A stretch of DNA of 64,000 nucleotides, from NCBI GenBank assembly GCA_964035545.1, contig OZ037769.1, positions 12,430,633-12,494,632 of the forward strand, in the 5' to 3' direction. This DNA comes from Bugula neritina (lineage: Eukaryota > Animalia > Bryozoa). Every line of letters begins with the position of its first letter. Position 1 is the stretch's first letter. Position numbers and translations under genes: made by a program. Positions 1 to 57,321 of the stretch are shown here, one piece after another. The notes beneath the pieces were generated by a model. The model had not been told where the DNA came from. It was given only the letters and a program-made list of their open reading frames with translations, and did no database searches.

Positions 1-289
1 GAGCATGAAAGGAAAAGTAGTATTTCCATATATTCAGTTATATTTATGATTCGAATGGGAGATAACACTCTTAGAAGCTTTACGCCAAAGCTCTTTAACT
101 AAACATAAAGATTTACACTATATTTTAGCTACTTTAAAAAATAGAATCTTAATTGTAGGCACTTTTTAAGATTTCCTTCAAGTTTTAGAAAATCTCAAAA
201 GTAACTTAAAATTGTATATACACATTAATTAACTGTAAACAGCTGTAGCATATTACATAACTTACTGAGTTGTTTGCTCGATTTGTTAG

Positions 290-3200
290 AAAGCAGTGCT
301 TAGATCCATAACACCAGAGTATGGGCCAGCATCAGGGGGTACAGAAGTAACTATTACAGGAAGTTACATCATAGCCCATAGCACAGTAACGATGACCAGC
401 ACAACACACTCAGCAAAAGTTTATACAAGGAAAGCAACTCCAAAGAAGTGAGCTATTTTTAAATAAATAACTTTATAATCTTCAGCATAATTCACATCAA
501 AATAATTTTTACCTTTGAGGAAGTTTATAACCAACTTGAGTACACCAATGGGTTTTGTTGTAGCCGAGTGGTGCCTGGCATGCTTAAAAAACCACCAAAA
601 TGAGTGTTTTGCTTGATCTCAAAGCTCTCAAAATTCTATATTTTGTCACTCTTTTCAGGAGTAATAAAGATGGATTAGAACAAATAGTGTTTGTAACTCC
701 AGTCTCCCAAGGAACTGAGGACAAGTTTATCATTCGGCTTGCTGGTGGAGTGCTAGAGACTTCAACTCTCCTGACGTTCAGTTACAGACCTGATCCAGTT
801 GTGACATTTGTGAGATCTAGGAATATAAATGTTGAGTAGGTTATGCAAAGACTGTGCCAACTTTTAGACTATTGGCATATCTTTACATATCTGAATAGGC
901 CTGAAGCACTATAAATGGTAAAATTATCATAAAATGCAAACAAATAGATTTCAATAACAGCTTGTAGCCTAACTACTGCTACCAACTTTCTAGAGTAGTA
1001 TGTATAATTGGTTGTTATTTCTTTGATAAAGTAGGACAATTATATTATACGTAGGTACCTTTAGTATCCACAAACCAATAGCCTGTTACTTGACAGTGAC
1101 TGCCTTGCATTTTCTAGAGGTGGACTAGAAGTGAAAGTGGTGGGAGACAACTTCAACTCAGTAGCTCATATCCGTCTGCTCACACACCTACATTGCCTGA
1201 CCACTGGAAAATATTACAAGACTGTTTCTTCAGTGAGTAATCTTAATTGAAAATACAGTCTTTACATTATACTTTGCTTACTAATCAGAGAGAGTTAATC
1301 ATTAAACAGCTGCCTAGTTTATGGGATCAGTTTAAATGGTGGGGTGAAATATCGAATCACTTTCTGAGATTACAGTTTGATATTTTATAATTTTTCTAAA
1401 GACTGCTCAGTGACTCAACAGTCAATGCTGAGATATATTTGGCTCATCGCAAACCAAAAAAGACAATGTATAAGTATATCATTATCAAGTAAATAAACAG
1501 TTGCAGCTGTCTAAGTACAGAACTTTTTTTATAGCAAATGAGATTTGTAGTGCAGCACCAACAATGGCACCAACAGCACCACCATAAGACAAAACTGTAA
1601 AACTTTTACCCCGCCCCCACTATAATTCCTATATAAGCAAGTGCGATAACCATTACACCCCAGAAGCTACTGGGGAAACTCAACACTACAGACACCAATT
1701 CTTTAATCTAGTACTGTAAAAAATCAAAGTGTACTAGTTAGTTTGATGTGTTATTAGCTAGATCTCAATGTGTGCAAATATTGTTTTCACCACACTGACA
1801 TTTTTGCACTGAACTTATCTTTTTATTGAACAGAGCTGTCAGGGGAATGAGACATTTCTTATTTGTATTACCCCAAAACTCACTGAGGAGTTGCTGAGAA
1901 TAGAATGTGTCAGGACTCAACGTCTGCGAAGAAGAACCAACACTGTGCTACGAACTGATTACAGTGAGATATACGCTGTCTTGGGTCTACAATTTGATGG
2001 GCTACAAGATTACCAGCGCTTAAATACATCATTCAAGACAAGAATATTTTCAAACCCAGCAATAAAAATGCTGACAAAAGCTGAAAGAAGTTTGACTGAA
2101 GATGAAATATTGCTGGAAATATTTGGTTACGGTCTGATAGATTGCTGCCGGGCTGACGATTACTCGGTCACGGTTGGTAATGAAGAATGTGTTATTGAGA
2201 AGTTGACCAATTCTAGAATATTCTGCAAGTTACCAGAAAGTTTTCACTCTGCTGAACACAACTCCAATTTCTCCCTCACCGTAAGTAGTTGACATCACCA
2301 GCTTGACTGTTACGTTTTTTATATCTCATTTACTAAAAACCATTTAATTTTTTTAATTCTGGAACATACTGAATGATTTTATCTTTAATACAAAAACCTG
2401 TAATTGCTTAAGAATAGTTGTTCAAGAAAAACTTGTAAAATAAATGCCACTTCCTGCTTGCAAGCAGACGGGCTAACCAATTACACCACAGGAAGGGGGA
2501 GGAGCTGCTGGGTAAACGCAACACTACAAGCAACTAACGAAAATTCAATAAACTTTTACAGCCCGATGAGACTTGAGAATAAATCCTAAGATCTTAAAAA
2601 ATTATTGAATATTATTCAACAGCTTGCTTTTTCAGTGTTCATTATTTTGCAGATTTTTCTAGGCGAAAACACAACTCTTTACTCTGATGTAATAACTAAG
2701 CAGAAGGTTGGAAGCATTTGGGAGGACAAAGAGTTGGTGACAACCTTAACTGTTTCAATCACAGTCACTATTGCGGTGACAATTATCATAACCATTGCAG
2801 TCATATGTGTTTACCACAACCGATCTTTTACAGAGAAAGTATTTGAAGCAGTAGAAGGTATGTAAAGGCTTTATGCAGAAGTTTTTTCGAGATGTTTTAA
2901 TTGTTTGTATTCTAAAAGTGAACTTTGGAAATTGTACAGTTGACTCTGTCTCAGTTAAAGTAGTTAATGTTACCTCATTCATAGGAACTTCTGAGCATCA
3001 AAAGGTTTCTAATATGTGGGTCATCAGTAATAACAGTAATATGCAACTGTTAACAAAGTATACTGAGTGAATAGCCAAAACCCTAAAAAAGTTCAAGAAA
3101 AAAAGCTAAACTGCACGAGTACATTTTCATGTGCTATGCGCAAATATATGACTTTGCTTAGGATTTTACCTAATAGTTTGATATTATGGTTATCTAACTT

Positions 3201-4449
3201 GAAACAATTAGTGCATTTTGCTTGTTACCACTTGTCCAAGTAGATAGTTGCATTATCATGAAAAGTTAATTTTCTTTCATAAAGCAACTTAATTAAGAGT
3301 CAAACTACCCAAATACTAAACTAAAAATTACATGCTCACACTAAGCAAAGTTCAATATTTTGGCAACCAGCAGCAAATTTTTTAGAAATTTGTTATCAAC
3401 GCAAAAATTATGCTAAAACTAATAATTTACAAAAAAGCTTGCTCTGAACATTAGATGTGCTATATATAAAGCTATAAAACTTATCTTTTCACTATGCTAT
3501 AGACAAATTGTCATAATTATATACCAAAATGCTCAAGCTGCCATAAACTTTTCTAGATTTGATTGATTAGGATAGAAATGTTACATGTACTTTTACAGCA
3601 TGTTTCATGATGCAAATATTTATTGGTTTTTCAGATAAGCAAGTATACCAAATTAAAGAAAAGCACAGAAGTGATAACCTTCCTCCGACAAGCAGCCATT
3701 TTCCTGCACATTTAGCTGGTCTAACTGTGAAAGTTAATCACCAGCAGGACCCAATAATTACCAGACACCAGGATCTTCTCTCAAGACCTCAGACTTTACC
3801 TCCACGTTCTAGACAGCCTGTTCAGCGCAGCCATAGACATAGTTACTACCCAGGAATAGACAGCATACAATATGTTGATGTAGATGATATACAGTATGTA
3901 GACACAGGGGAAAATATCCAGTACATGGATCCATTACATGATTTACAGTACCATAATACGGCTGATAATGCAAACTATGTGTATGCGGATACAGTTGGGG
4001 ATATACAGTACACAGATACACTTGGGGATTTACAGTATGCAGATACTGCAACAGATATACAATACATAGACAGAGTAGGAGATATACAGTATGTCAGCAC
4101 AACAGACGATATACAGTATTTAGATACAGCAGAAGGTGCATACTATATATGCACAACCGAGGATGGTAGACGTTATGTAGATACAGTAGATGGTAATCCA
4201 TATGTGGATACAACATTTAATAGAAACACTCTCAACACAATAGATGATATTCAGTATACAGGCAATATTGGGGATATACAGTATGCACACACAATGGGGA
4301 ATATACAGTATCTAGGAGCGCAAAGAAATGGGCTTTATAAATATGCAAAGAATACTGGAAGAAGTCTGCATGAATATGAGACTGACTTGTCTGATTACGA
4401 TGAAGAGTTGATGTGTTTGAATTCCATGAGTTGTGTAGAACACATTTAA
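290..4449 (+). CDS. 3' part of a single-pass receptor: plexin/MET-like IPT(TIG) domains, TM helix, Tyr-repeat cytoplasmic tail (5' end outside window)
   Basis: In-frame GT-AG exons 290-447, 659-835, 1118-1232, 1834-2280, 2653-2857, 3635-4449. IPT motifs: SITPEYGPASGGTEVTITGS, FSYRPDPVV, GGLEVKVVGDNFNSV, VTVGNEECVIEKLTNSRIFCKLP. Hydrophobic LVTTLTVSITVTIAVTIIITIAVICVY. No kinase or GAP motifs before the stop at 4449. Confidence 0.8.
3865..4317 (+). repeat. Coding 27-bp (9-aa) degenerate tandem repeat, consensus D-I-Q-Y-x-D-T-x-G, about 16 units
   Basis: GATATACAGTA recurs at ~27-nt spacing. Units include IQYVDVDD, IQYVDTGEN, IQYMDPLHD, IQYTDTLGD, LQYADTATD, IQYIDRVGD, IQYVSTTDD, IQYLDTAEG. 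Confidence 0.9.
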
Positions 4450-5303
4450 AACAGCTAATGTCTACTGTATATATAAGAATCATATGCAATGTTTGTAGCA
4501 GGTTTTATCACTTACAATGAATGACTCAAAGTGACTTTATTAAAGATTTGTTTTTAGCATGATTTACTAATTATCTTAGTTGTATGACCAAGTTGTTTAC
4601 TTTCAGTGTTTGCAGCTAATATTTTACTCATATTGGTAAACTCTGTGAAGATACATACTTGACATATTTTTTCTCATGCTTAAAAACTTTCATATGTTGT
4701 ACTTAGAATCTGCAGACTATTATAGTTAGTAAGATTCAGCCTCCTTTGCAGCTATGGCTTCAAAATCCTCTGCCATTATAATATAATTTAGAAAACTATG
4801 TGTACTGTGTGATAAATAATAAGTGGTTGGTAATTAGCTTCCAAAACCTGGTTCTGTAGTTTCTTGTAGACTATATTGAGGATAGTAATGTCACAGGAGG
4901 GAAATAAAATTAGCATAATTAATTGGTTGAAATTAAGTTAAACACTATTTTCAAGGCAAAACAATTTATGATTTTCCTATGACTTTTATTTCAGAATACT
5001 GTAAGCATCTCTTAGCAGACCTCATTATTAATAGTTGTTTCTAAAAAATACATATAATTTAATTAACTGCAGACACATCCAAGACTTTATTTTGTTGTTA
5101 GCTATGGGACATGCTGCAACATTTGGTATGGTCAATTAACAAATGTAATTTTAGCTGTACTTACGACTATTATATATACATTGCATATACTAATGATCTT
5201 CCATTACAAGTTATTTGCTTCATTCAAATGTTGCGCAGAAGCACGATTTACTACATTCAATATCACTATGTCCATCTATGACGCTATGTGCAACATTTTC
5301 AAG

Positions 5304-8300
5304 TCACTGTGTAGCAAGGCTTTGAAGTTTCTGCTTGATAACCGTTGCGGATTTCCACGGTACAACCTGAGCGTTTACTTCAGACATCCTTGACTTGAGC
5401 ATCTGCTCTAGAGGAAATGTAGCCCGTGGGAACACGTAGTCATTGTCAGCTAGTCTGAGGGATGGGCAGAAGTCGTTCTCTCCATCTCCTGTATAGCAGA
5501 CAGTGGAGTATGGAGTGCCAGCTTTTCTCATTGTTTCAATATGGTCTTCGATCACAGCTCCTGAAAGTAAACAAACATTCTTTGCTAAGACTGACATTGC
5601 AACAGTTAAACAAACATAATTTCTGCTAAAAGCCTATAAGTTTCAGTTGGAACCATTCATTGCAACTGGCTATCTATGATTTTCATGTTTGCAGCATATA
5701 GATGTTACTGGAATAAAGTCCCATTCACACTACAGCAAATGCTCCATCCACACTATAGCTAATGCCCTGTTCACTCTACACCTCATGTTTTCTTCACACT
5801 ATAGCTAATAGTCTCAATCTCATTATAGCTAACAATTTGTTCACACACAAGAGAGCTGGTAATTTGCTACTTGCTAGTCACAGCTATTATATAACATAGT
5901 GAGATACTTTACATGGGAACACACTTTTCAACAGGTGCACTAAATGCTTACTTTGCGCTCTAGTGTGAACTGTACATAAGAGCTATAAGAGCACTGACAA
6001 ATTATTTTGTAAGTGTTTGATTTGGCAGTGTAAGACATTCAGGAGTCATATGAAGTTTTCATATAGGTAGTAGTGAGCTTAGCTTATGTATTCTTAACCA
6101 CAAAAGTTGCTCAGCCTGTGGCTCTTTTGGTATGTTCTCATAGGCCATTTATAAACCTCAGAGGTTCAACATTCCTGTCATGTTGCTGTTAAATTTTCTG
6201 ATAGCTTTATCACTGTGTTTCCGTACGGATTACATCGAAGAAAAACCATACTTTCCTATGCAATCCATAAGAAGTTATCTTATCTTTTCAGTTGTGCCAG
6301 ATGAATTAAAATGCAAAATAATATGGCCAACTCTGAGTCAGTGTTCATACCCAATGACAATTTAATTACTGCTTCTGCCCCTTATTTTTGCTAGATTAAA
6401 TTCATTAAATACACAAACTTTGAGTCAATTTATTTTAAATTAAAAAAGCACAAACCAATGAAAGCATAAAGTATTTGGTGATCAGTAAACTAAAGCTTGG
6501 GAGTAATTTAAATTTTTAAAATGAAAATAGCTGTTAATTTCTTTTTATAGCTTGGAAATGCTTTGGCTTACAGAAAAGTTTTATAGATTTAAGATGATTA
6601 AATTATTTTAAATAATAGCAGCTAAGATAAATGAAATAATTTAGATTGTTATGAGATGAAAGACACTTTAGCGTAGGTTATAACTTATAATTATTGTTTA
6701 CAATCATGTAATGGGGTCGACAGCCTACGGTCGAAACTGAACTGTGACAGTTGCGTTCAGAAATCAGACAGTTGTGACGTCACAGTGTTCAACGCTTAGC
6801 CTCGAAAACGCGTTCACAGTTGAGTTTCGACTGTAGTCTGTCAGCCACATTACTATGTAACTAGCCACCATAATCGCCGATCTCTGCCTCCACCACAAAA
6901 GGTGCCATTCGATTTCATCTAAAGACTCATTTCCATCATTCGCATAATGCGAAGAAAATTTTTCTTAGAAGGAGCAATTCGAATGAATTCCGTCTGCGGT
7001 TTTGTTTCGATGCAACTATTTCCATAGGGTGAATGAAAAATCCATTTGTATAATGCAAACATGGGACCGTAGTTTATATTATAATTTGCAAAATGGTATA
7101 AAACCACAAACTACCTAGCTAATTAGCCTATGCTTGATAAACAGCACTAACTGGATAGCGCAGTAGTGATTGTAGGTATTGACATATGCAGGTGCAAATG
7201 AGGGATTAAATTTGCAAAATAGTTTAGAGAAAGAACAGTCTAAAAAAAAAAGTTAAAACCCTTTCTCCATAGTTTAGTAGCAGTTCTTATTGTGTGTATA
7301 TTATAGATATGTATACATAGAGGGAGTTACTCAAAGTTTCAAATTCATAATTGAAACATCAGATATGGGTAGAGAGCCTATCTTTATGCTTGCAGTAACT
7401 TGAAAACATGATAATCTTTGGTTATCATATAGGGTAGATAAACCAGTAGGTTAGAATAGTGTTTATCACAGCTTTCTTATGCAATATACCTCTGACTTAG
7501 CTATTGTCTAATATTTTCTAGAAGATTTGATAACATGACTTAAGAATATTGAAACAAGAAGAAATGAGGCATGCACACATGTCATGCAGTGATAGGAGAT
7601 ACTAAGTAAGAGATAAGATTGCGCTGGAATAGATTCTGCAGCTATGCCATGATGCAACAGCTATTTCTACCTTCTTTTTTAAAGATTTTATAATTTTTTC
7701 AACAGATCATCAATATTATACCAGGAGATTTCGAAATTCTCTAAAACAGTGTATTAGTGCCAATATTTTCAGTGAAAACTTGCTATGAATTTCCCCCATG
7801 TTACTCATAGTGACTCGATATGCTTATTTAGTTCAACTTATAAATTATTATAACTAGGCCAGTGCTAATTCGCCAGCCATTAGAACATTGCATCTCCTAA
7901 TTTGCCTTATGTACTTTTAAAATTAATTTGATTTAACACTGTATACAGTATAGAAACAATAGGTAGTCTTAGAAAATATATAGGCATGTGATGAAATAAA
8001 AAACGTTGTCACTGGTGAGGTTTTCAATTTTCCTCAGTTTTCAGAGTGCAGTAAATATTAATCCAACTTTTAGCTACAGTTATAAGTTCACCCAGTTTAG
8101 TGAAGGAACTAGATTTATAAGCATATTAAAATTTGTTCTGCTTCAAACTTTAAATTTGAATCTTTTAGCAGGAATTAGTGCCATGAAATTATTAAGAAGC
8201 TGAATTTGTGTAAACTTTTTATGCTCGACTTTTGGGCTGTTTCTTTTTATGGCACCATCTTTTGTTTCAAAATTCAACCTTGAAGAAGGTCGACTGAGGA

Positions 8301-11336: not shown

Positions 11337-13248
<1,912 letters not shown>

Positions 13249-35606: not shown

Positions 35607-37069
35607 GTTTGTGAAGCACTGAGGTGAATTTCACATTAGGTTGTAGCAATAATATGCAAAATCTGGGTTTAAACCTACAACATAAATCTTCTTACTACAA
35701 ATAAATTCTACACAAAGTATGTAAGGTAAAGATGTTAAGAATAAATATGAAATGAAGAACACATTTTCTATACATGAAAATAGCATCAGTATAACATTCA
35801 ATTTTAATAGATTTATATTCATCAATGTTATTACATGGCCGAACATCGGCTATATAACTGAATAAATAGAACACAACTACATTATGTGATAGATGTCACA
35901 CTTGAAAGTTTCCGGAGCTAGCAAGAAATCATTTTTACAACCATACTAATCGGTGTTATCATAATAATTCCATCAATCAAGTGCTAATATGACTTAATGT
36001 ATTCCATTGTAGCTCTCAGTGTAAGCATCACTACAGGCTTTTACAAGCAAAACTTTTAAAGGCATCAAAGAGTATTTAATTTTATATATTAAACATTAAT
36101 TTGCTGTAAAAATTAAGGCCAATCAGTCGTTAGCTAGGCATATCTTGTTAGTTGTTTCAACACAAATAAAAACACATAAAAATAACAGAAGTATTTGGGG
36201 CCTACAGTGTCTTGGCACAGCAAATATTTTAGTGCCTGAGTAAGAGTTCAGTTTTATTTATATCAATATTATTATTAGTACTACAACTAGTATATTTTAT
36301 TATTCCATTTGGGCATTTAGATTTACTTATCAATATACTGAGACTTGTGATATTATTATACTGAATATAGTCATGCCTCGTTGTGATAATCATAGCCATA
36401 ATGATAATGATGATAATGATAATGAATTATATTAGTTAATGTTATAACCATAAAAAGATAATGATATTGAATTTGATAATAATTGTATTTATCAATGAAC
36501 AATAGACAGTATGACTACCAATATTAATATCAATAATATCAATTACATCAATTTCAATATCAATTAATATTAAAATTATAATCATAATGATATTGATAAT
36601 CTAAAAGTATAACTACAAGTACATTATAAATCATTAGACATTATGATTATCATTATCATTATAAAATTATCATTATGCCTATACTAATATTTATAGTTAA
36701 TGTTATAATATTAATAATAATTTAAATTATAATAAGTATAACTAAAAACTATTACTAACCTAAAGTAAATATTAAAAATAAAATAATGGACTTTGAGTAA
36801 ATAAGTAATTTTTATTCAATATCTTTCTCAAGTCTAAATGTAGCAATTAGTAAAAATGCCAAAGCCTATGTTGAATATTTCTGAAAGAATTATAATTTAC
36901 AGTTTTATAATAGAACTAGAAGAAAATAAAGTTAAAAATTTTTGTGTCAATGGTCATGGTGATCCTTCGTTGTTCAAAGGAAATATTCGGATGTCAAGTT
37001 GAAAAATGTTACAAGTGGAAGCGACACAGTAACAGCATCTTATTCCGAACAAATAAAGCCAGTTTAAGG

Positions 37070-37496
37070 CAGTGTGGTATATTAAGAGTGTTGACTTTAA
37101 ACCATGAAAAATCATTATGTCGCTAATGGTACCGCGAGTTTATATAAGTTATAAAGGAAAAATTTTGCCACTTTTGTGATTTTATTTTTTTTTTTATATT
37201 ATGTGTCCATTTTTTTTAGTTTTGTTTATTGGTAAAGTTTTTAAACATATTTTCAATACATGTAAAATTTTAAAAATAATTAAAACTTAATCATGCACGT
37301 AAATACAAAGCTATAAAGTTTAAGCTTCGCTGTGATTACAATGTGAATATGAATTGAATAATGCTTGCAATAACCATTTTACACAAAATACGTTACAGTT
37401 GCTATAAATGTAAGACTAGTAAATTGGATGCAAATAGGCACGGTAATACTATTTGATTTATGCTATTTTTGAAATTTGTAGTAAATATTCGGCATG

Positions 37497-37570
<74 letters not shown>

Positions 37571-38486
37571 AATATATTATATATTGTTATATTATATATA
37601 TATATTATATAAGTATAATAATATTATATAAGTATAATAATATTATATATAATATATATATTATAATAATATATTATATAATATAATAATATTATATATA
37701 ATATATATATTATAATAATATATTATATAATATAATAATATAATATATTATTATATTATATATTATATTATATATATATTATATATATATAATATCATAT
37801 AATATATATTATTATATTATATTATTTATAATATATATATATATTATAATAATATATTATATATTAATATATATTATATTATATTATATATATATAATAT
37901 ATTATACAAGTATAATAATATTATATATAATATATATATATATATATTATAATAATATATATATTATAATAATATATTATATATTATTATATTATATATT
38001 ATATTATATATATTATATGTATAATATCATATATAATATATTATTATATTATAATATTATATTATATATTATATTATATATATATTATATATATATAATA
38101 ATATCATATATAATATATAAAATATATTATTATATTATATATTATATATATAATAATATCATATATAATATATTATTATATTATAATATTATATATTATA
38201 TTATATATATATTATATATATATATAATAATATCATATATAATATATAAAATATATTATTATATTTTATATTATATATATAATAATATCATATATAATAT
38301 ATTATTATATTATATATTAAATTATATACATTATATATATAATGATATTATATATAATATATATATATATATATACATATAATAATATTATATATTATAT
38401 ATTCATATATATATATATATATAATAATATATATATATATAATAATATATATATATATAATAATATATATATATAATAATATATAT

Positions 38487-38540
<54 letters not shown>

Positions 38541-38977
38541 GCCAAATATTTACTACAAAATTCAAAAATAGCATAAATTAAGTAGTATTACCGTGCCTAT
38601 TTGCATCCAATTAACTAGTCTTACATTTATAGCAACTGTAGCGTATTTTGTGTATAATGGTTATTGCAAGCATTATTCAATTCATATTCACATTGTAATC
38701 ACAGCGAAGCTTTAACTTTATAGCTTTGTATTTATGTGCATGATTGAGTTTTAATTTTTCTTTTAATTTTATGTGCATTAAAAATGTGTTTAAAAACTTT
38801 ACCAATAAACAAAATTAAAAAAAATGTACACATAAAATAGAAAAAAAATAAAATAACAAAAGTGGCAAAATTTTTCCAATATAACTTATATAAACTCGCG
38901 GTACCAATCTCGGCATAATGGCGCCCATATGATTCCGTAAGATTTGCTAATGGCAACACTCTTAATATACCACACTG
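37070..38977. mobile_element. Non-autonomous hAT-like foldback DNA transposon: ~430-bp inverted arms, ~1-kb AT-only core, 8-bp TSD
   Basis: Termini cagtgtggtatattaagagtgttg / caacactcttaatataccacactg. GTTTAAGG is directly repeated at 37062-37069 and 38978-38985. Arms 37127-37498 and 38536-38905 are reverse complements with scattered mismatches. Confidence 0.85.
37499..38535. repeat. AT-only low-complexity core
   Basis: TA/TAA/ATT satellite with almost no G or C. Confidence 0.9.
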
Positions 38978-40560
38978 GTTTAAGGTTGCTTAAAGAGTTT
39001 TACGAACAGGGTTAGGAGGATTCACTGTTACTTATGGGTGCATCCTAATTTCAAGAGAAAATAACTTACAAGTGACAGTGTGTGCTGAGGTTTTTTTATC
39101 ATGTAGGCATTACTCACCAGCAAGTCAAGTTTTAAATGAGTTTATAGTCCCCAACGTGAGATTATCCGTACTCGATGCTTGCTACATGCTACCGTTTTAA
39201 GTTCTACTCGAGCATGTTAGCACAAACAATATAGTTACAGACCGTTAGTTATTACACACATAAACAACATAACATACCACAATATTTAAAATGTATATGT
39301 GTATTATAATGTAAACAAATGAACAGCCTTGAGAATTGGTTGCCTGTTCATGCTATAAAAATCCTACTATTCTACTATTATTTTAGTCATTAACTGTCTA
39401 ATTATCTTCATAGTACATATATTGCAACTAACAAGCTATCATTAGTTTCAAAATAAAGATTGTTATAATAGCATTTGTTTCAAGTCCAATTATTATTATT
39501 TTCATCAAGACATATAGAGCACATTTTAAAGTTTGTGTCACAGTACATGAGGCTGCTTTTCAGGTAAGGATAACTTCCATGTGCATGCACGGAACTATTT
39601 ATATAACTAATGTGACTGCTTTCAGACACCAGAGTTCAAGAGACTATATATAATGTATAGCTGCAAGCATATTGTTCCAGTCTCAAATCAAGCAAAGTAG
39701 AGCAAGTTTTAATCATATATCATATTAGACTGGTCTGTAAATAGCATAAATACAGCTCTATTTTGTGCCATATCCAGGTGCAATATTTACCTGCAATTTT
39801 TCACTAACACTTTTGCATTGATATCTTATAAATAAAGAGTATATTGCGTATATTATAACATCACAATAATTTATTACAAAACGTTGATTATATTACACAT
39901 TGCACGTGTTAATGTAAAATATTCCTATATTCTGTGTAGAAGTTGACATGGAGATGCTCGCTAATTATGTATAACGGTGCACAAAATATACTAAAATATT
40001 ATATAAAAGGACCATATATAATAATAATAATAATAATGGAGACTACTATAATATAAGAAAGTGCAAAAACACAAAGTAATGTTATTATAAAATGTGGTAA
40101 ATAAAAATAGCGATATAAATATAGCAATTTTCTTATTTTCATGTTTGATGCTGTTTTAATATATAAAATGGAAATAAATATAAGTTAACAGTTGCTTGAA
40201 TATTAAAACCTCTATTTTGCATAATTATCACCAGAGTGCATATATTAATTAAAATAAATAAAGAAGACAACTACAAACACATGATCACATTAGTGATATT
40301 ACGCTGGATTATCACAATAAAAGAGTATTATAAGGAAAAGCAACTTCTCTAAAATGCAACTTGAAACTTTAGTGACAAAGCAGCAAAAAGCTGTCACGTC
40401 ACAATATTGCTGCTGCTATAACAATAGAACATTATAATCAATATAAGTTAATATTACAGTAATACAGGTGCTCATGTCTAATTTGCAACCAACAAACTTA
40501 AGATCAGCTGCATGATATAACAATGAATAAATTGACCAACATTTTCCTAAAAATTATCAT

Positions 40561-49500: not shown

Positions 49501-52500
49501 CAGTAATCACCATACTTAGGCATTAGCAAGCTAGCTTACTTAACTATAATTACAGCATTAAGAACGATACGCAACAGTATTTATAGTATACTGATGCACG
49601 CAGTTATTTCAGAACAATAGAGGATGAGAATCCATTACATTCTCCCCCCATCGAAAAGCATCCCCTTTTCGATAACAGAACAATGATTTCACACAAAACA
49701 AAAAAAACAAAAAAATAAAACACAAAAGTAGAAAAATATGCGATTAACAGAAAGTATTATGATTAGTCACACGTATCACAATAATATAAACAATAGTAGT
49801 ACCCGTAATATATACAGTCCGGGTGGCCAATGCTGGCGGCTCCCAATTGTCCGGTTCAGTTATTTGAGGTGGTGCACCAGGCTTTCTATCCCTTCTGTAC
49901 AACGGTCAAGGGTACCGGACCAGGCCTGGATTGCACTATCTAGGACGCACTCTCGGTAAGGAAGTGCCATACTCTGCCCGTGACGGGGCAATTGTGAGTG
50001 GGTCGGCTGGGTCTTCTCTTCTATCTGGCTGCCTGGTGCTCCAGGCTCTTTGCCCAGTCTTGCCAGCGCTACCCGTAGAGGCTGGGTGGTGGCTGCGGTA
50101 GCGCCATCTCCAATCAGCTGGGCGGGTAGTAGGGTCGTGGCCTCATCTTCTTCTTCTGGAGGGGGGTCCAAGTCAGTCATAGGTATGGGGTATCGCCACC
50201 TACCTCGGCCAACATTACCCGAAAGAGCTGGGTACCTGTTGTCCAGGTGACTGTGCTGGTCTGGGGGTAGTTGCTTTTGGAGAAGTCCGGTACTGCCAGG
50301 GCTGTTCTGCGACTGAGGCTCGGAGTTTTTACCCGTACTGGGTGTACCACTCCTCTGTGGGGACATCTCCATGTGTCCCACGTGGTAGTCCGCCAGATAT
50401 CTGGGGGGCCTTCTCGCCCTCTGACTCCTTTCCTGCTGTATAGGCGCTGCTGGTGCCAGTGGCTCCTCAGCTACCGCTGAAGGGGGGTCCCCGCCTTCAC
50501 CCGTAACACGGGTGGGGGTGTCCTCCCCCTGGAGGGGTGGTGGTCCTAGGGCTTGCTGTCGTTCTTGTTCCCGCTCCTCTCTCTGTTGTCGCTCCAGTTG
50601 CTCCAACAGGGCGGTTTGCTCCTGGTCCGCCTCTCTGGGGAACACAATTTCTACCTCTCGAGGGCGGGTGGCCTGTCCTCGACGGCTGGGCTGGCGGTGG
50701 GGCTCTAGGAGGGGTGGGGCTTGACCCACCGCGTCTGGGCTGGCCTGGTACGGCTTCAGGCGCTGCTCGCTCTGGACTGAGACCTGCCCAGAGCGCTCCA
50801 CACGGTACGTGTGGTTCGGCAGCACCTCCACCACGCAGTAGGGACCGACGAACTTGGGCTGAAGCTTAGCCGACTGTCCGCGTCGCCTACGATAGCTCAC
50901 CATCCAGACCCAGTCTCCCACCTGGTACAACGGGGGCTCTTCCGAGTCCTCTGTGCGGGTCTGCCACTGCTGGGTACGCAGTGCATCATGAGCTTTGCCC
51001 ATGATGTCTATCAGACCCTCCACATATTCGTGTACCGGTGACTCGGGGGCAGGAACATGGTATGTCAGGTGTTCCGGAACCCGCGTCTCTCGGCCTAGCA
51101 TCAGGAAGTTTGGGGTCTCCTGCGTGGCGGAGTGTGGTGTGCTGCGGTAAGCCCGCATGATTTGCGGCAGCACCACGTCCCATTCTTCTTGACCTCGACC
51201 AAGGAGCAGGCTCCTGAGGGCGTCACCCAACATCCTGTTGTTCCGCTCGACGACTCCGTTCCCTTGCGGGTGATATGGGGTGGTCCGACTCTGGTTCACC
51301 CCCCATATCCGGCAGAGGTCTCCCATGAGCTGGGACTGGAACTGGGCACCCTGGTCCGTATGTATCTGCTCGGGTAAACCGAGGTAACAGAACACATGTT
51401 GGTCCAGGGTCCGGGCCACCGTGGGGGCTGTTGCATCTGGAATAGCCAGAGCATCTGCCCACCGGGTAAAGTGGTCCGTGAGCACCAGTATCCAGGTGTT
51501 CCCTCTGGCGGATAACGGCATAGGCCCGACGAGGTCCACCGCCACTACTTGCCACGGTCGACCAGCGTATAGCCGGCGTCGACCAGTGGTTTCCGTGGGG
51601 CGGCCATGCTTGCTAGCTTGGCAGACCTCGCATTGCCGTACCCGCAGTCGTACGTCCCAAGTCATTCCGGGCCAATACCAACGCAGCCGCAGACACCTGA
51701 TGACCCGACTGACTCCAGAGTGAGCCTGCTTATGGGTGTCCCAGATCAGTTCCCGTCGGAGGGCGCGTGGACAGACGACGCGGTCCCTCTCCTGCTGACG
51801 GTTGTCTGCTGCTAACGTTATCATCAGGAGGCCATCAGGACTGACCTTGAGGGTGTCCCAGCGACGACAGAGGAGTTGGAACTCAACGTCTCCCTGCCGC
51901 TGCTGTTCCTCGCTAGGTCGTCGGCCCTCCTTCTTGGCCCGGAAGATGTCCGCTACCGCGCCGGGTAGCGTCTCCTGGAGTCGGCACAGCTCCTTGACGT
52001 TCTGGTACAGAGTGGGGTTGGCGTGAAGCGCCTGGACGTCGTCTGAGTGGGTTTCGGTTCGAAGATGGCCGTGCTCCCACCGATAGACGGCGCCCTCCCC
52101 TAACTCTGTTTCCACGTCAAGGCGAGCGGGTCCCCCGTCCCGCTGTTCAATGTGCAGGCATTGCTTACAGTCCTCTACCGGCCGGCGGCTCATGCTGTCG
52201 GCGTTCCCGTGCTTCCGGCCAGCACGGTGCTCTATCCGGTAAGAGAACTCGGCAAGAATCTTTAGCCAACGAGCCACCTGGCTCGAGGGCTCTGCACGTT
52301 TACACAGCCATATCAGTGATGCATGGTCTGTTCGCAAACGGAACGTTCTCCCATACAGATATGGCCGAAAGTGCTTGACCGCCTTGACTACTGCTAGGAG
52401 TTCCTTCCTAGTGGTGCAGTAGTTCTTCTCGGCGGCCGCGAGAGTCTTGCTGTAGTAAGCCACGACCACCTCACTTCCACCCTGGACTTGAGACAGGACA

Positions 52501-55500
52501 GCTCCCACGCTGTGGTCGCTGGCATCGGTGTCCAGGATGTACTCTTGGGCTGGATCAGGATACGCCAGAATTGGCGCCTCCATTAGCCGCTGCTTGAGGT
52601 GGTCGAATGCCTGCTGCTCCTCCTGTGTCCACTGCCACCGGACCCCCTTTGCGGTCAGCCGATTCAACGGCTGAGCCACTCCTGCGAAGCCAGGTATGTA
52701 CTGCCGGTAGTACCCTACTAGGCCCAGGAACGCGCGCAACTCAGGGAGGTCACGGGGGACAGTCCACTCCTTCACAGCCTGTACCTTCTCCGGGTCGGTA
52801 GCGACCCCATCACGGCCAACCACATGGCCCAGGTACGTGACTTCCGGCTGCAGAAGTGCACACTTGGAGGGCTTCAGCTTCAGTCCAGCTGCCCGGAGAC
52901 GGTCAAAGACCTCCCGCAGACGACTGACATGAGTCGAGAAGTCTGGGGAGATGACAATGACGTCGTCCAGATAGATGAGGAGGGTCTTCCAGTGTAACCC
53001 ACTGAGGACCTGCTCCATGAGCCGTTGGAAAGTTGCCGGAGCGGACGTTAATCCAAATGGCAGTACTTTCCACTTCCAGAGCCCGTCGCGGGTGATGAAT
53101 GCTGCTTTGTCCTGGGCATCAGGACTGAGGGGTACTTGCCAGTACCCGCTAAGCAGATCCAAAGTACTGAAGTACTTGCTACCCGCGAGAGCATCCAGAG
53201 ACTCATCTATCCGTGGGAGAGGGTAGGCGTCCTGGATGGTAACGCTGTTGAGTCTGCGGTAGTCCATGCAGAATCTCCAGCTACCATCCTTCTTCTTGAC
53301 AAGGACTACTGGAGAGCTCCACGCACCGTGGGCAGGCTCAATCAGATCCCGGTCGAGAAGATCCTGTACCTGTCGGCTCACCTCCTTCTCCTTCTCCGGG
53401 CCTAGACGCCGGGTAGGCTGCCTGATGGGAGTGGTGCCGGCTGCCAGGGGTATCTCGTGGGAGATGACCTTGGTCAGCCCCATGTCTCCATCGCCACGAC
53501 TGAAGACATCACTGTACTCCGCAAGTAGTTGAGCCAGTACTTGGCGTTCAGTACTACTTGTACAGTTTCCGCACGCTCCATCGTATAGGTCAGCCATATG
53601 CTCCGGGACTGCTCCTCGTCTGGTGTGAGGGGGGTTCCCCTGGGTGTCGGCCACTGTCTCCAGTGCCGGACCCACATCCGCTTCCTGGATGGAGTGGTAC
53701 TTCCCCACCAGCGCTCCAGCCGATAATCGGACAGGTTCCGTGAAGGGGTTGATGCACTGCACGAGGAGCTCCTGCCGACAATCTAGCCGATTCAGGCTGT
53801 TTGCTAGTCGGATCGCTCCGTGCGTTCCCTCAACCACCCCCAGGCCGGCGATCCCCTTGCAGTTGACTCTGCAGCGAAGAGTCGCCTGGGATCTCCCCGG
53901 AACCGTGCAGTCCCGCACTACCTGGACTCCGCCCACCAAGGGCCTTCCGAACTTGTCGACGCAGACAAGCTCCTTCCCAGCCATCACCACCACTGACTTC
54001 TGGAAATCCATGTGACACTGGTGTTTCTCCAGAAACGGCATTCCCAGGATGGCGTCCTCCTTCAGCTGGCTGACTATGAACGTCTCGTGAATTGCTTGAT
54101 CACGGACGCGTTCAGGTAGTGAAATGACGCCGTAGAAAGGAATGCATGATCCGTCCGCCAACGTACCATGCGCACCTTCATACGGCTCGAGGCTCGCCCG
54201 CTCTCGTGCACCAAGAGTGTCAAAGAGACGCCTACTCAGCAGGTTGGTAGTGCACCCAGTATCCAGTAGGAATGTGGCAGCTTTACCCGAAATCTTTCCG
54301 GGCAGGAAGTAGCTGCTTCCATACGGCTGGGTGCTCCTGGAGCGGTCAGTCTCTGGGGGAGACACAACTTGGGTCCGCACAGCGGGCCTCCTCTTCGTCT
54401 TAGAGACAACGGGGGTTTTCTGAGGTCGGGAGGGTAGCTTGGGGTACTCTTGCGAGTAAGCTGAATCCTCCTCCACAACCTCCTCGGGCAACCCCGCGAA
54501 CCGGTTCTGGAGTGGCCAGGCCGGAGGATCGGGTAGACCTTGCGGTCTCCGAGATCTCTGTGGCCTCTGCCACTCGGTATCGGTAGACCCTGTGGAGGTC
54601 TCTTCTTCTCCTCTCCGAGTCCTATCCCGGATGGGATTGGCGTGAGGCCCACGGTTGGCGGAAGTTACCGTGAGCCTTGGGTGTTTAAAGGCCCTTGGCC
54701 TCTAGGGCAGTGCCTCCTCATGTGCCCTTGCGCCCCGCACCCCCAACAGGTTAGCAGAGATGGGCGGACAGGGTTGTCCCGTGATCGGGGAGCCCGCCTA
54801 TCCGCCTGTTCGCTCTGCAACTTCGTCACCGTAGCCTGCAGGCCTTTCATCATGTCCATTAACATGGTGAGCTGCGTCTGCTCGGGTGATTTAGTTGCAG
54901 CTGCTGCTACCTGTGGAGTTGGAAGTGGGGTGGTCTCCTCACGCTCCTCGACCACTTGGCGGGCTGTATAGCTCGGTCGCCTAGGCTCTTCCACCTGGAA
55001 GTAAGCCTTCCCCATTTCCAGCGCCTCCTCTATACTGTTGACCTTGGCGGCCAGCCAGTATCGCTGCAGGTCCGGGTGATTCACGCTCCGGAAGAACGCG
55101 TTGTAAACGAGGCGCTTCCGGTCATTGCCAGTGGCGTGACCGAAAGCAGCCTGAGCCAGGCGCTCTACCTCGTTTGCGTGGTCTTCCAGGGGAGTCCTTC
55201 GGTCCCTCCTCATGATCTGCAAACGATCAGCTGCTTCTTCGGCTGTTAGGCCGAACCGGGCTCTGAGAGCCCGCATGATGTGCTCTTCATCAGGCCCAAG
55301 AGCGAAGCTCTTGGCCCGGCCTGTCAGACAGGCCCGAAGTTGGAGGATGCGCACCCGTACTGGCCATTCAGCGATGGTGGCCACATCCTGGAACTCCCTG
55401 ATGAATTGCTCTACGTCTCCTTCTCCTCCGAAATTCGGGGGCTGGAGGCGATACCTCTCACCAGGTGTTGCCTGTCCTTGCCCCCGCAATCCCTGGAGGG

Positions 55501-57321
55501 CTGTGACCAGCGCCTCAACAGTGAGGGCTGGTGGTGTTGCTGCCTCAGGGGCTGTGTCCCCTGGGGCCATTGCGTGCCGCTCGGCAACTAGTTATTCGAA
55601 AATCCCACCGCTGCCATCAATGTAGTAAACTGTGGGTTTTGAATGCAACTAGTGCCTACATGCTCTAGAGAAAATAAGCCAAGTATCTGAATACGAATGA
55701 AGATAACTTTATTAGCATCAAATACAGCTTATGTGGTCCTACTACCAGCGAGCTCCAGTAGTAGTCTGAACTACACTGGAACTCGCTGGCTTTTATATAC
55801 AAGCGAGACAAAGACATTCCTTTGTTGCCGAGATCGGGGTTCCGAAATGCCGAATATCGGCATTTCGGGACTCCGAAATGCCGAAACGTCGATTTTCGGC
55901 ATATCGGCATTTCGGAAGACCGAAATGCCGATCTCAGCAACAAAGGACACACACAAAAGAAAGCAACATTAGTAAAAGAAAAGCACTATTAGTAAAAGAG
56001 ATATTACATAACTTCAGAATGCGTATTTCAGTAAAATTACATTATGCTGAAAGCTTAACAGTAATCACCATACTTAGGCATTAGCAAGCTAGCTTACTTA
56101 ACTATAATTACAGCATTAAGAACGATACGCAACAGTATTTATAGTATACTGATGCACGCAGTTATTTCAGAACAATAGAGGATGAGAATCCATTACAATA
56201 TATTACTATCTCCCTAGTTAGAAACACCCTCCGATTCAATTATTTATTGTTTTATTATACTATCTTAATTGGTGCATTATTAGAGAAATGTTAACAGTTT
56301 AGGTTTTTTAGTTTTTTTTATAGATTTTAGTTTGGGGCGGAGGAGGTTGAAATTCTAGGGGAACATAATTTATTTTCAAACATCTAGATCATAGACTTTT
56401 TCCAATTTCTCAATTACTGCAACTACTTGTAGTTTGTGGAGCCAAACTGAACCAAAATATTCTCGTTAATATAAAATAAACTGTGTGTTACATCTGCTCA
56501 CTTCAACTCGAATTCAACTTTTAAATAGTTTTAATATAAATACAAAGAGAAAAGAATACTAAGTAATTATTTGTAAACACTTTGGGATTATCTTCACAGG
56601 TTTTTAAGTTATTCTACTCATTGGCTATTTAGAGAATTTATGTAAACCAAGTATTATCCAGTTGGTTATTCCTATGACTATACTGTGCAATCACTAAGCC
56701 TAGGGCCACACGGTGCGTATTTTCGCATGCGAAAATTGAAACCACAAGTAGCGAAGGCGTCCACTGTAGCGTCAGTGATGCGTGATAAATAACGCTTTCA
56801 TTTTTAAATCGCACTCGCTTTCAATAAAACGCAATTTACTGGAATTTAGCACTAAAGTAACGAAATTGGGCTCGCTTAATCACTACCAGCCAATTAGGTG
56901 ACGACGACAGAGACGATTCGCACTTGCGTTGAAAATGCAGAGCGACAAGTGCGAACGTTTTCTCAACGCGCACAGTGGACACCTTTGCTACTTGTGATTT
57001 CAATTTTCGCATGCGAAAATACGCACAGTGTGGCCCTAGGCTTACTGTAATGATGACCTGTTACATAACATTAGTTTTCAACCAAGTGTTTGTCAGTGGT
57101 CATATGCATATATTACTATCAATGGAAATATTCAACTACTAGTCATATACTTACATATACTATTATCAGTAAAAGAATATTCTCACCTGTTCTCATCATC
57201 TGCTGTTTATCTGCTCTCGGAGTTAGGCTCAGTTCGTCTTCAGAGAAATTCTCTTCACTGGTTGAAGTCAGCGTCAGCTCAGATTCATCAAAAGAGTTTT
57301 CTCTGAATGAATAGAACTCTT
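40561..57321 (-). CDS. Multi-exon intracellular-type protein with two Ig I-set domains (titin/MLCK/palladin-like) and a long low-complexity tail
   Basis: In-frame exons 57321-57187, 48993-48835, 48445-48251, 47564-47391, 47000-46863, 46401-46316, 45982-45589, 45101-(~45000 or 44868), 44277-43157, 42595-42037, 40649-40561. I-set motifs RFTTKPKS..GDVAKFTC..WFKD..DAGQYICIAKN and APLFLKEL..EGDTVKFRCKV..PPPRVMWYKDG..DAEFTVMAKN. Confidence 0.75.
42636..42843 (+). mobile_element. tRNA-derived SINE, copy 1
   Basis: A box tggtctaggggttag, B box gttcgaaccc, body attggtgatgttaggaaaagcatccagtcataattgctcctgtgccaca. Aligns with 61445-61645. Confidence 0.75.
43640..43870 (-). repeat. Coding 24-bp (8-aa, NHGANSTT-like) tandem repeat, ~9 units
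   Basis: TTNHGVSTTAYHGANITTNHDASITTKYGANTTAYHG...NHGINSTTNRGANSTTNHDANSTT. Confidence 0.8.
46443..46845. repeat. Intronic ~22-bp minisatellite (catgtactacacactactacca)n
   Basis: Direct inspection. Accounts for the three overlapping T/H/Y ORFs. Confidence 0.9.
47908..48019 (-). mobile_element. tRNA-derived SINE, partial copy 2
   Basis: Minus strand gagcagctgtggtcttgtggttagagc...ggttcaaatc...attggtgatgccagaaagagcattt matches the other two copies. Confidence 0.65.
49063..49639 (-). repeat. 3' LTR
   Basis: Matches 55621-56197 except one visible difference (ccagTgagc vs ccagCgagc). Contains minus-strand TATATAAAAG and a downstream AATAAA. Confidence 0.95.
49640..49649 (-). other. Polypurine tract
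   Basis: GGGGGGAGAA directly before the 3' LTR on the minus strand. Confidence 0.85.
49860..54689 (-). CDS. pol: Pol polyprotein (protease, RT, RNase H, integrase), reached by -1 frameshift from gag
   Basis: FLLDTG; YWQV..LPFGL..IYLDD; LDTDASD..ELLAV..RTDH; HKQAHSG..CEVC; VDLVGP..HTDQG..NGVVE; PKFVGPY. The frame is open from the TTTAAAC heptamer to 49860. Confidence 0.95.
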   Translation of the reverse strand, partial: FKHPRLTVTSANRGPHANPIRDRTRRGEEETSTGSTDTEWQRPQRSRRPQGLPDPPAWPLQNRFAGLPEEVVEEDSAYSQEYPKLPSRPQKTPVVSKTKRRPAVRTQVVSPPETDRSRSTQPYGSSYFLPGKISGKAATFLLDTGCTTNLLSRRLFDTLGARERASLEPYEGAHGTLADGSCIPFYGVISLPERVRDQAIHETFIVSQLKEDAILGMPFLEKHQCHMDFQKSVVVMAGKELVCVDKFGRPLVGGVQVVRDCTVPGRSQATLRCRVNCKGIAGLGVVEGTHGAIRLANSLNRLDCRQELLVQCINPFTEPVRLSAGALVGKYHSIQEADVGPALETVADTQGNPPHTRRGAVPEHMADLYDGACGNCTSSTERQVLAQLLAEYSDVFSRGDGDMGLTKVISHEIPLAAGTTPIRQPTRRLGPEKEKEVSRQVQDLLDRDLIEPAHGAWSSPVVLVKKKDGSWRFCMDYRRLNSVTIQDAYPLPRIDESLDALAGSKYFSTLDLLSGYWQVPLSPDAQDKAAFITRDGLWKWKVLPFGLTSAPATFQRLMEQVLSGLHWKTLLIYLDDVIVISPDFSTHVSRLREVFDRLRAAGLKLKPSKCALLQPEVTYLGHVVGRDGVATDPEKVQAVKEWTVPRDLPELRAFLGLVGYYRQYIPGFAGVAQPLNRLTAKGVRWQWTQEEQQAFDHLKQRLMEAPILAYPDPAQEYILDTDASDHSVGAVLSQVQGGSEVVVAYYSKTLAAAEKNYCTTRKELLAVVKAVKHFRPYLYGRTFRLRTDHASLIWLCKRAEPSSQVARWLKILAEFSYRIEHRAGRKHGNADSMSRRPVEDCKQCLHIEQRDGGPARLDVETELGEGAVYRWEHGHLRTETHSDDVQALHANPTLYQNVKELCRLQETLPGAVADIFRAKKEGRRPSEEQQRQGDVEFQLLCRRWDTLKVSPDGLLMITLAADNRQQERDRVVCPRALRRELIWDTHKQAHSGVSRVIRCLRLRWYWPGMTWDVRLRVRQCEVCQASKHGRPTETTGRRRLYAGRPWQVVAVDLVGPMPLSARGNTWILVLTDHFTRWADALAIPDATAPTVARTLDQHVFCYLGLPEQIHTDQGAQFQSQLMGDLCRIWGVNQSRTTPYHPQGNGVVERNNRMLGDALRSLLLGRGQEEWDVVLPQIMRAYRSTPHSATQETPNFLMLGRETRVPEHLTYHVPAPESPVHEYVEGLIDIMGKAHDALRTQQWQTRTEDSEEPPLYQVGDWVWMVSYRRRRGQSAKLQPKFVGPYCVVEVLPNHTYRVERSGQVSVQSEQRLKPYQASPDAVGQAPPLLEPHRQPSRRGQATRPREVEIVFPREADQEQTALLEQLERQQREEREQERQQALGPPPLQGEDTPTRVTGEGGDPPSAVAEEPLAPAAPIQQERSQRARRPPRYLADYHVGHMEMSPQRSGTPSTGKNSEPQSQNSPGSTGLLQKQLPPDQHSHLDNRYPALSGNVGRGRWRYPIPMTDLDPPPEEEDEATTLLPAQLIGDGATAATTQPLRVALARLGKEPGAPGSQIEEKTQPTHSQLPRHGQSMALPYRECVLDSAIQAWSGTLDRCTEGIESLVHHLK
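54613..54689 (-). other. -1 programmed ribosomal frameshift signal (U UUA AAC plus downstream stem / pseudoknot)
   Basis: Heptamer 54689-54683 is in X XXY YYZ register in gag. A 6-nt spacer is followed by the stem GGCUCACGGU/ACCGUGGGCC. Pol is in the -1 frame. Confidence 0.85.
54665..55570 (-). CDS. gag: Gag (capsid-like region plus CCHC zinc knuckle)
   Basis: 301-aa ORF after the PBS. PNFGGEGDVEQFIREF, LRACLTGRA, CWGCGAQGHMRRHC. Confidence 0.92.
   Translation of the reverse strand: MAPGDTAPEAATPPALTVEALVTALQGLRGQGQATPGERYRLQPPNFGGEGDVEQFIREFQDVATIAEWPVRVRILQLRACLTGRAKSFALGPDEEHIMRALRARFGLTAEEAADRLQIMRRDRRTPLEDHANEVERLAQAAFGHATGNDRKRLVYNAFFRSVNHPDLQRYWLAAKVNSIEEALEMGKAYFQVEEPRRPSYTARQVVEEREETTPLPTPQVAAAATKSPEQTQLTMLMDMMKGLQATVTKLQSEQADRRAPRSRDNPVRPSLLTCWGCGAQGHMRRHCPRGQGPLNTQGSR
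55601..55619 (-). other. Primer-binding site for tRNA-Leu
   Basis: TGATGGCAGCGGTGGGATT, 1 nt inside the 5' LTR. Complementary to the tRNA-Leu 3' end (..AATCCCACCGCTGCCACCA) with one mismatch. Confidence 0.8.
55621..56197 (-). repeat. 5' LTR
   Basis: See the 3' LTR; adjacent to the PBS. Confidence 0.95.
56697..57042. mobile_element. MITE with ~75-bp TIRs and TA flanks
   Basis: ta|agcctagggccacacggtgcgtattttcgcatgcgaaaattgaaa ... tttcaattttcgcatgcgaaaatacgcacagtgtggccctaggct|ta. Confidence 0.85.

Follow-up and report, generated by a model that had tools for sequence, protein, structure and literature searches.

Positions 290-4449 of a 64,000-nucleotide stretch of the genome of the bryozoan Bugula neritina (hereafter the window; contig OZ037769.1, G000:C5:12430633-12494632, in a genome of 216 Mb with 34% GC) hold the 3' part of a gene for a putative type I receptor, in which several IPT/TIG domains and a transmembrane (TM) helix are followed by an enzyme-free tail rich in tandem tyrosine-bearing nonapeptides. 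The gene is real, single-copy and about 13 kb long, its signal-peptide-like start (L002:1267, in the numbering of the upstream stretch used throughout) lying about 8.7 kb ahead of the first position of the window. Exons were read by eye from the sequence, after which their borders, phases and stops were checked by script; all domain calls were made exon by exon, which lowers their sensitivity. The six exons within the window [Table 1] are GT-AG bounded, compatible in phase and devoid of internal stops; the script took 832 as the end of the second exon where the hand-read donor implies 835, with the phase unchanged. Further 5' lie two Cys-rich exons, at L002:8532-8700 and L002:9421-9566, which connect in phase to exon 290-447, the exon immediately before it ending in phase 0 at a GTAAGA donor. 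At the 3' end, the TM exon would be spliced to a last exon of 815 bases (3635-4449) in a transcript that is presumably expressed. This 2857-3635 junction is favored because the phases fit, the acceptor at 3634 is strong and a second in-frame acceptor lies 36 bases upstream of it at 3598/3599. The original prediction, made from the letters alone, had described several IPT/TIG domains, one TM helix and a last exon composed of a Pro/Arg/His-rich linker, a 27-base repeat array and a stop codon, an observation that was confirmed as a whole. Pieces of two receptor introns (1643-1692 and 2452-2530) display a word depth of about 2000-2700 as against 145 in their flanks, and the loose ends of these pieces resemble tRNA-derived short interspersed element sequence (GGATTCGAACC-type).

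The ectodomain had been proposed to be plexin-type, a description of which only the IPT stalk stands. Two window exons carry Pfam TIG matches above cut-off (290-447, 27.3 bits against a cut-off of 20.9; 1834-2280, 22.7 bits), the second of which also falls among IPT/TIG clusters in the Atlas feature search; another IPT domain, spanning the end of exon 2, exon 3 and the start of exon 4, is predicted from its motif and would bring their number to three. As in plexins and MET/RON, tandem IPT/TIG domains precede a single TM helix in a type I protein, with a Cys-rich module ahead of the first IPT. That module (L002:9421-9566, eight cysteines directly before IPT 1) has no Pfam match and could be either EGF-laminin-like or PSI-like. 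Unlike plexins and MET/RON, the receptor shows no Sema or PSI match, no Plexin GAP and no kinase, and its head contains a laminin-type EGF domain. Ten upstream exon-sized frames, where a search for Sema and PSI had been suggested, yielded zero exon-wise Pfam matches to Sema, PSI (PF01437) or Laminin_N, and Sema found no match at E<=1 on these frames or on the window exons in this exon-wise search of reduced sensitivity. The EGF_laminin match (L002:8479-8733; E 3.2e-5, 24.4 bits against a cut-off of 21) is the sole identification to come out of the exon-wise Pfam, PDB and genome-wide Laminin_N searches of the head exons. A Laminin_G_3 signal at L002:4501-4731 is weak and below cut-off (E 0.24, 12 bits). 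Exon L002:6471-6695 shows by eye a motif resembling that of LN domains, which is a lead only, and the six-frame genome search with Laminin_N (PF00055) lists 20 places, none of them at this locus. Of a proposed usherin-type head, these matches bear out only the laminin EGF part.

In the TM exon, Kyte-Doolittle hydropathy peaks at 2.67 over 19 residues, after which come H-N-R and more basic residues. The tail should be cytoplasmic because the helix is preceded by a signal peptide at the N terminus and by Cys-rich modules outside the membrane. It is about 290 residues long overall; the 270 residues past the junction codon comprise a basic linker of 74, a repeat region of 164 and an acidic end of 32 whose terminal V-E-H-I we take to be a candidate PDZ-type ligand. 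The tail is acidic and, judged by its composition, probably disordered: the array has 29 acidic and seven basic residues, for a net charge of about -22, and the linker, array and C-terminal end all fall on the disordered side of a charge-hydropathy plot in which a control IPT exon falls on the folded side. AlphaFold2 (AF2) drew a few short strands at residues 150-183 of the tail at a predicted local distance difference test (pLDDT) score of 33.8 and a predicted template modeling (pTM) score of 0.18. As a true IPT exon submitted as a single sequence failed as well (39.6), single-sequence AF2 is uninformative here.

Seventeen of the 25 tyrosines of the tail lie within repeat units, mostly spaced exactly 27 bases apart between 3859 and 4350. 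The unit consensus GAA GAT ATA CAG TAT GTA GAT ACA GTA reads E-D-I-Q-Y-V-D-T-V, with [IL]-Q-Y present in 12 units and Y-x-D-T in seven of the 17; the first unit has Y-V-D-V and three have Y-V-D-T. Tandem Repeats Finder detected a period of 27 only at 3988-4133, the best-kept five or six copies. Identity between units is 54-58%, compared to 29% between random intron 27-mers (99th percentile 52%), and the array is clearly the product of an old tandem 27-base duplication, in line with the minisatellite-type expansion that had been proposed for it. The accompanying suggestion that copy number could tune signaling fared less well. Units this diverged would not slip readily, which makes tuning of this kind unlikely in the array as it stands, and the array looks fixed rather than dynamic, not a live minisatellite. 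The only DNA run, from which the assembly itself was probably made, matches the window exactly over 200-5000 and reveals no alternative allele or copy-number form. Three units had been matched to known docking motifs, namely an immunoreceptor tyrosine-based inhibitory motif (ITIM; IQYVDV), YxxP (YMDP) and YxN (YHN), and each of these does occur once in the array. The ITIM pattern [IVLS]-x-Y-x-x-[LVI] occurs just this once in the array and once more ahead of it (SYYPGI), which is weak in a tail so rich in tyrosine; in the remaining 16 units, position +3 is taken by Thr, Pro, Arg, Asn, Ala or Lys. YxxP is not a serial motif in this tail, as it is found at one (YMDP) of the 25 tyrosines.

Several lines of evidence support that the reading frame of the tail is under constraint and that the tyrosine position is under selection. 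The coding frame contains no stops, and the other five frames contain from three to 12 (nine and 12 in the two other forward frames). None of 5000 Markov shuffles of the exon reached 270 open codons, the maximum being 156. In a repeat-aware neutral null, in which 17 consensus units were mutated at the observed divergence of 31% in 20000 runs, the frame stayed open in 75 runs (0.4%) and an average of 6.5 and a maximum of 14 tyrosines were kept, as against the 17 observed. The first two positions of the tyrosine codons are invariant in the 17 units, the third alternating synonymously between TAT and TAC, and tyrosine is the best-kept residue (17 of 18 registers), ahead of threonine and aspartate. 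The tyrosine, the [IL]-Q preceding it and the D-T following it have been kept while the rest of the unit drifted.

No enzyme domain was found in or near this tail, consistent with the original prediction. The 270-residue tail gave no Pfam match at E<=1, Ras/Rap-GAP and kinase included, and no match in PDB or the Atlas, and a tblastn search in which the five kinase exons from a MET-type gene of the same genome served as queries gave no match across the 64-kb window and the 30 kb preceding it. Searched against 1.84 billion representative sequences with phmmer, the tail returned 13 matches, all of them to unrelated periodic proteins and restricted to its repeat part. Within its own genome, where a search for paralogs of the ectodomain and tail had been suggested, the tail, exons 1834-2280 and 290-447, and head exon L002:6471-6695 each matched only themselves. 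Taken with the Pfam results and domain calls, this lack of relatives supports the earlier proposal of a type I receptor that is restricted to its lineage, has an IPT stalk and lacks an enzyme domain. Full-text searches of the literature brought up neither a described family of such design nor any work on comparable bryozoan receptors. Weak genomic matches to the tail were considered as paralogs and rejected, as they proved to be noncoding minisatellites, near-perfect and with several frames open; the likeness of one C9:10256512 unit to the tail consensus (18 of 27 bases) came from a search biased towards finding it. Such noncoding 27-base arrays could be the raw material of coding repeats.

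The same genome encodes MET-type receptor kinases whose architecture is reminiscent of that of the receptor. Among these is a tandem cluster of five genes at C5:16622627-16720825, on the same chromosome, whose terminal exons are 88-91% identical to one another; one member of the cluster, 4.2 Mb downstream of the receptor, carries EGF_laminin, TIG, a TM exon and a tyrosine kinase (Pfam). The order EGF_laminin, then TIG, then TM, established for the one cluster locus that was examined in full, is common to the receptor and the local kinase genes, the latter having the tyrosine kinase domain that the receptor is without. The C-termini of the five cluster genes differ: V-Y-V-N-T-G-N-K-S-T closes two of them, another two are truncated and the fifth continues further. 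The V-Y-V-N-T-G motif resembles the Y-V-D-T-G of some tail units, a five-residue lead and no more. MET/RON receptors have C-terminal bidentate docking tyrosines of the Y-V-x-V type; the Y-V-D-V of the first tail unit, the Y-V-D-T of three others and the Y-V-N-T-G of the local kinases are too short for homology to be judged. When all receptor exons were compared by tblastn with four MET-type loci (that at C5:16.62-16.72 Mb, two at C3:23.65-23.71 Mb and one at C5:17.43-17.46 Mb), only the generic IPT motif was matched, with a best E of 1e-4 in a 120-kb database. Descent of the receptor from the local MET-type kinases was accordingly set aside, the comparison having revealed generic IPT matches and no kinase remnant, and the module order is shared without a recent common ancestry being demonstrable. 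The original prediction that the receptor had swapped its enzyme domain for the tyrosine array is not supported, there being neither a remnant nor a close enzyme-bearing paralog; with the MET-type likeness confined to the generic IPT motif, the case for an enzyme in its ancestor is not made.

Beyond the 3' end of the receptor gene, the window contains a convergent gene and a tRNA gene [Table 1]. A Ty3/gypsy-type long terminal repeat retroelement occupies 49860-55570 on the reverse strand. It has an open gag-like frame of 301 residues and an open pol frame of 1543 residues encoding protease, reverse transcriptase, RNase H, integrase and a Tf2-type SH3 domain, and in composition (GC 0.51-0.58 versus 0.34 around it) it is alien to its host. 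Positions 36001-40000 form a block very rich in AT (GC 0.21).

Table 1. Coordinates of the receptor gene in the window, of its neighbors, and of two noncoding repeat arrays elsewhere in the genome.
Feature	Position	Strand	Evidence and remarks
Exon, first half of IPT/TIG domain 1	290-447	+	Phase 0 in; AG acceptor, GT donor; Pfam TIG E 3.8e-6
Exon, second half of IPT 1 and first residues of IPT 2	659-835	+	AG acceptor; GTAGGT donor at 836-837 read by hand; expected phase open; no Pfam match on its own
Exon, start of IPT 2	1118-1232	+	G-G-x-x-V-x-V-x-G-x-N-F motif only; no Pfam match; AG/GT, phase fits
Exon, remainder of IPT 2 and IPT 3	1834-2280	+	Pfam TIG E 9.9e-5; Atlas IPT/TIG clusters 0.94
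Exon, juxtamembrane stalk, TM helix (about 2734-2814) and basic stop-transfer residues	2653-2857	+	Hydropathy; GT donor at 2858, leaves 1 base
Start of last exon, Pro/Arg/His-rich linker of ~74 residues	3635-3858	+	Strong pyrimidine tract and CAG at 3632-3634; frame suits phase-1 donor
Array of 17 diverged 27-base units	3859-4350	+	Register analysis; one unit-length gap without Tyr at 4216-4242
Acidic C-terminal segment with two further Tyr, ending V-E-H-I	4351-4449	+	Stop codon at 4447-4449
Candidate poly(A) signals, ATTAAA at 4539 and AATAAA at 4903	4539-4908	+	Pattern scan
Last exon of PHOSPHO-type phosphatase gene	5307-5597	-	Pfam Put_Phosphatase 2.3e-20; convergent, bounds the receptor 3' end
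tRNA gene	12218-12288	-	Rfam RF00005, 40.6 bits
Noncoding 27-base minisatellite	G000:C9:10256512-10256673 (L008:1487-1649)		6 copies, 97% matches; frame reads L-D-S-I-Q-Y-T-D-S
Noncoding 27-base minisatellite	G000:C3:21177856-21178359 (L011:1504-2068)		20.8 copies, 94% matches; frame reads V-I-Q-Y-S-D-L-V-S

The reading that we favor is that of a non-catalytic receptor signaling through tyrosine phosphorylation of its tail. The protein would be of type I, with a weak LamG-like signal, a laminin-type EGF domain and three IPT/TIG domains outside the membrane, a TM helix and an enzyme-free tail. Clustering driven by a ligand would allow an associated tyrosine kinase, either of the Src type or one of the genome's own MET-type kinases with their same EGF_laminin-IPT-TM order, to phosphorylate many of the 17 to 25 tyrosines, and the phosphorylated tail would then recruit SH2 or PTB proteins at high valency. 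Taken as a whole chain, from expression to docking, we regard this proposal as evenly poised between right and wrong; the interpretation offered with the original prediction, of which it retains the phosphotyrosine array, was supported in part. A bolder version, which we put forward as a speculation with little chance of being correct in full, would make the receptor the extreme of a series of bryozoan receptor tails with in-frame repeats: a kinase-less co-receptor, paired through its EGF_laminin-IPT ectodomain with MET-type kinases and offering them 17 docking tyrosines derived from their own Y-V-N-T-G, in an ErbB3-like division of labor that repeat expansion would have brought about together with a new SH2/PTB motif, [IL]-Q-pY-x-D-T.

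A number of observations weigh against a phosphotyrosine-docking receptor. The tyrosine itself helped to set the register of four of the 17 units, the constraint rests on within-array statistics from one genome, and this genome abounds in minisatellites with TAT-rich 27-base units. No RNA run was found that covers the stretch. Of the 17 units of the proposed SH2-docking array, just three fit classical SH2 motifs; to our knowledge, the dominant [IL]-Q-Y-x-D-T fits no known SH2 class, and Y-x-D-T lies outside the classical motifs for SH2 and PTB. The tail also contains 10 CK2-type [ST]-x-x-[DE] sites, several of which fall at the same position of the unit, and Ser/Thr phosphorylation or a plain acidic and tyrosine-based stickiness could be the property that was selected. 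In this alternative, the tail would be under selection without being a phosphotyrosine dock, its acidic Tyr/Gln/Thr-rich array undergoing CK2-type phosphorylation on threonine, providing multivalent weak stickers to a condensate or to a cortical scaffold beneath the membrane, or binding a basic or cytoskeletal partner. The recurrent CK2-type sites, the strong net charge, the position on the disordered side of the charge-hydropathy plot and a core unit that lies outside the classical SH2 classes would all suit such a tail. It is nevertheless tyrosine that is the best-kept residue, above threonine and aspartate, and the strong negative charge disfavors self-association; we consider this explanation unlikely, albeit one to be reckoned with.

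Somewhat less probable is an error in the 3' part of the gene model, with the receptor terminating two or three residues past 2857 or using another exon, and the open reading frame (ORF) at 3607-4449 being unexpressed or part of another transcript. Unspliced read-through past the 2857 donor meets a stop at 2863-2865, the ORF has its own ATG at 3607, compatibility of frame arises by chance one time in three and, as stated above, no RNA run was found for the stretch. Set against this is a frame kept open against strong odds, which implies that something is translated, together with the pyrimidine-tract acceptor and its in-frame companion 36 bases upstream. The 777-base gap before the last exon shows no evident exon or promoter for a stand-alone gene, the product of such a gene would start with a hydrophobic stretch of no evident use, and the next gene is convergent.

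That the array is a functionless minisatellite, decaying neutrally and tolerated in a terminal exon, is very improbable. The genome is rich in 27-base AT-rich arrays, some of which translate into units similar to those of the tail, but neutral decay accounts poorly for position-specific conservation and for a frame still open at 31% divergence; moreover, the noncoding arrays are 94-97% homogeneous with several frames open, whereas the array of the tail is diverged with one frame open. Least probable of all is a beta-solenoid or amyloid-like stack with two units per rung and a RHIM-reminiscent I-Q-x core, signaling by templated assembly, for although the regular nine-residue spacing, the alternation of hydrophobic and polar residues and the short AF2 strands are compatible with it, the acidity and charge-hydropathy position of the array favor disorder, no similar repeat fold was found in PDB by sequence, and AF2 provided no confident fold, the last being weak evidence either way given the failed IPT control.

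The proposed phosphotyrosine-bearing receptor has counterparts in several known systems. Enzyme-free animal receptors usually carry one to a few tyrosine motifs, and about 15 YxxP motifs follow one another in the substrate domain of p130Cas. As in receptors with ITIMs or immunoreceptor tyrosine-based activation motifs, nephrin, LAT and p130Cas, the tail (or domain) is devoid of enzyme and built of short linear tyrosine motifs. In contrast to those scaffolds, with which it has no sequence homology, the receptor has 17 nonapeptides in strict tandem on a large IPT receptor, and its unit is [IL]-Q-Y-x-D-T where theirs is YxxP, ITIM or YDxV. Multiplication of a tyrosine motif by tandem duplication is likewise seen in the EPIYA segments of CagA and the repeats of Chlamydia Tarp, arrays of tyrosine phosphorylation motifs whose valency sets signaling strength. 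CagA and Tarp are secreted bacterial proteins with recent, variable arrays, whereas the receptor is an animal protein whose array is old and diverged.

Enzyme-free receptors with tyrosine motifs and scaffolds with serial tyrosines are already known, and it is the present design that appears to be without a described family. If our reading is correct, 17 selected copies of a nonapeptide would place this tail among the most multivalent receptor tails described, tandem duplication would have built its valency and selection then frozen it, and [IL]-Q-Y-x-D-T would define a recognition motif outside the known SH2 classes. Read from the sequence of one genome, the receptor points to an unstudied route through which the surface receptors of bryozoans may have evolved their signaling output.

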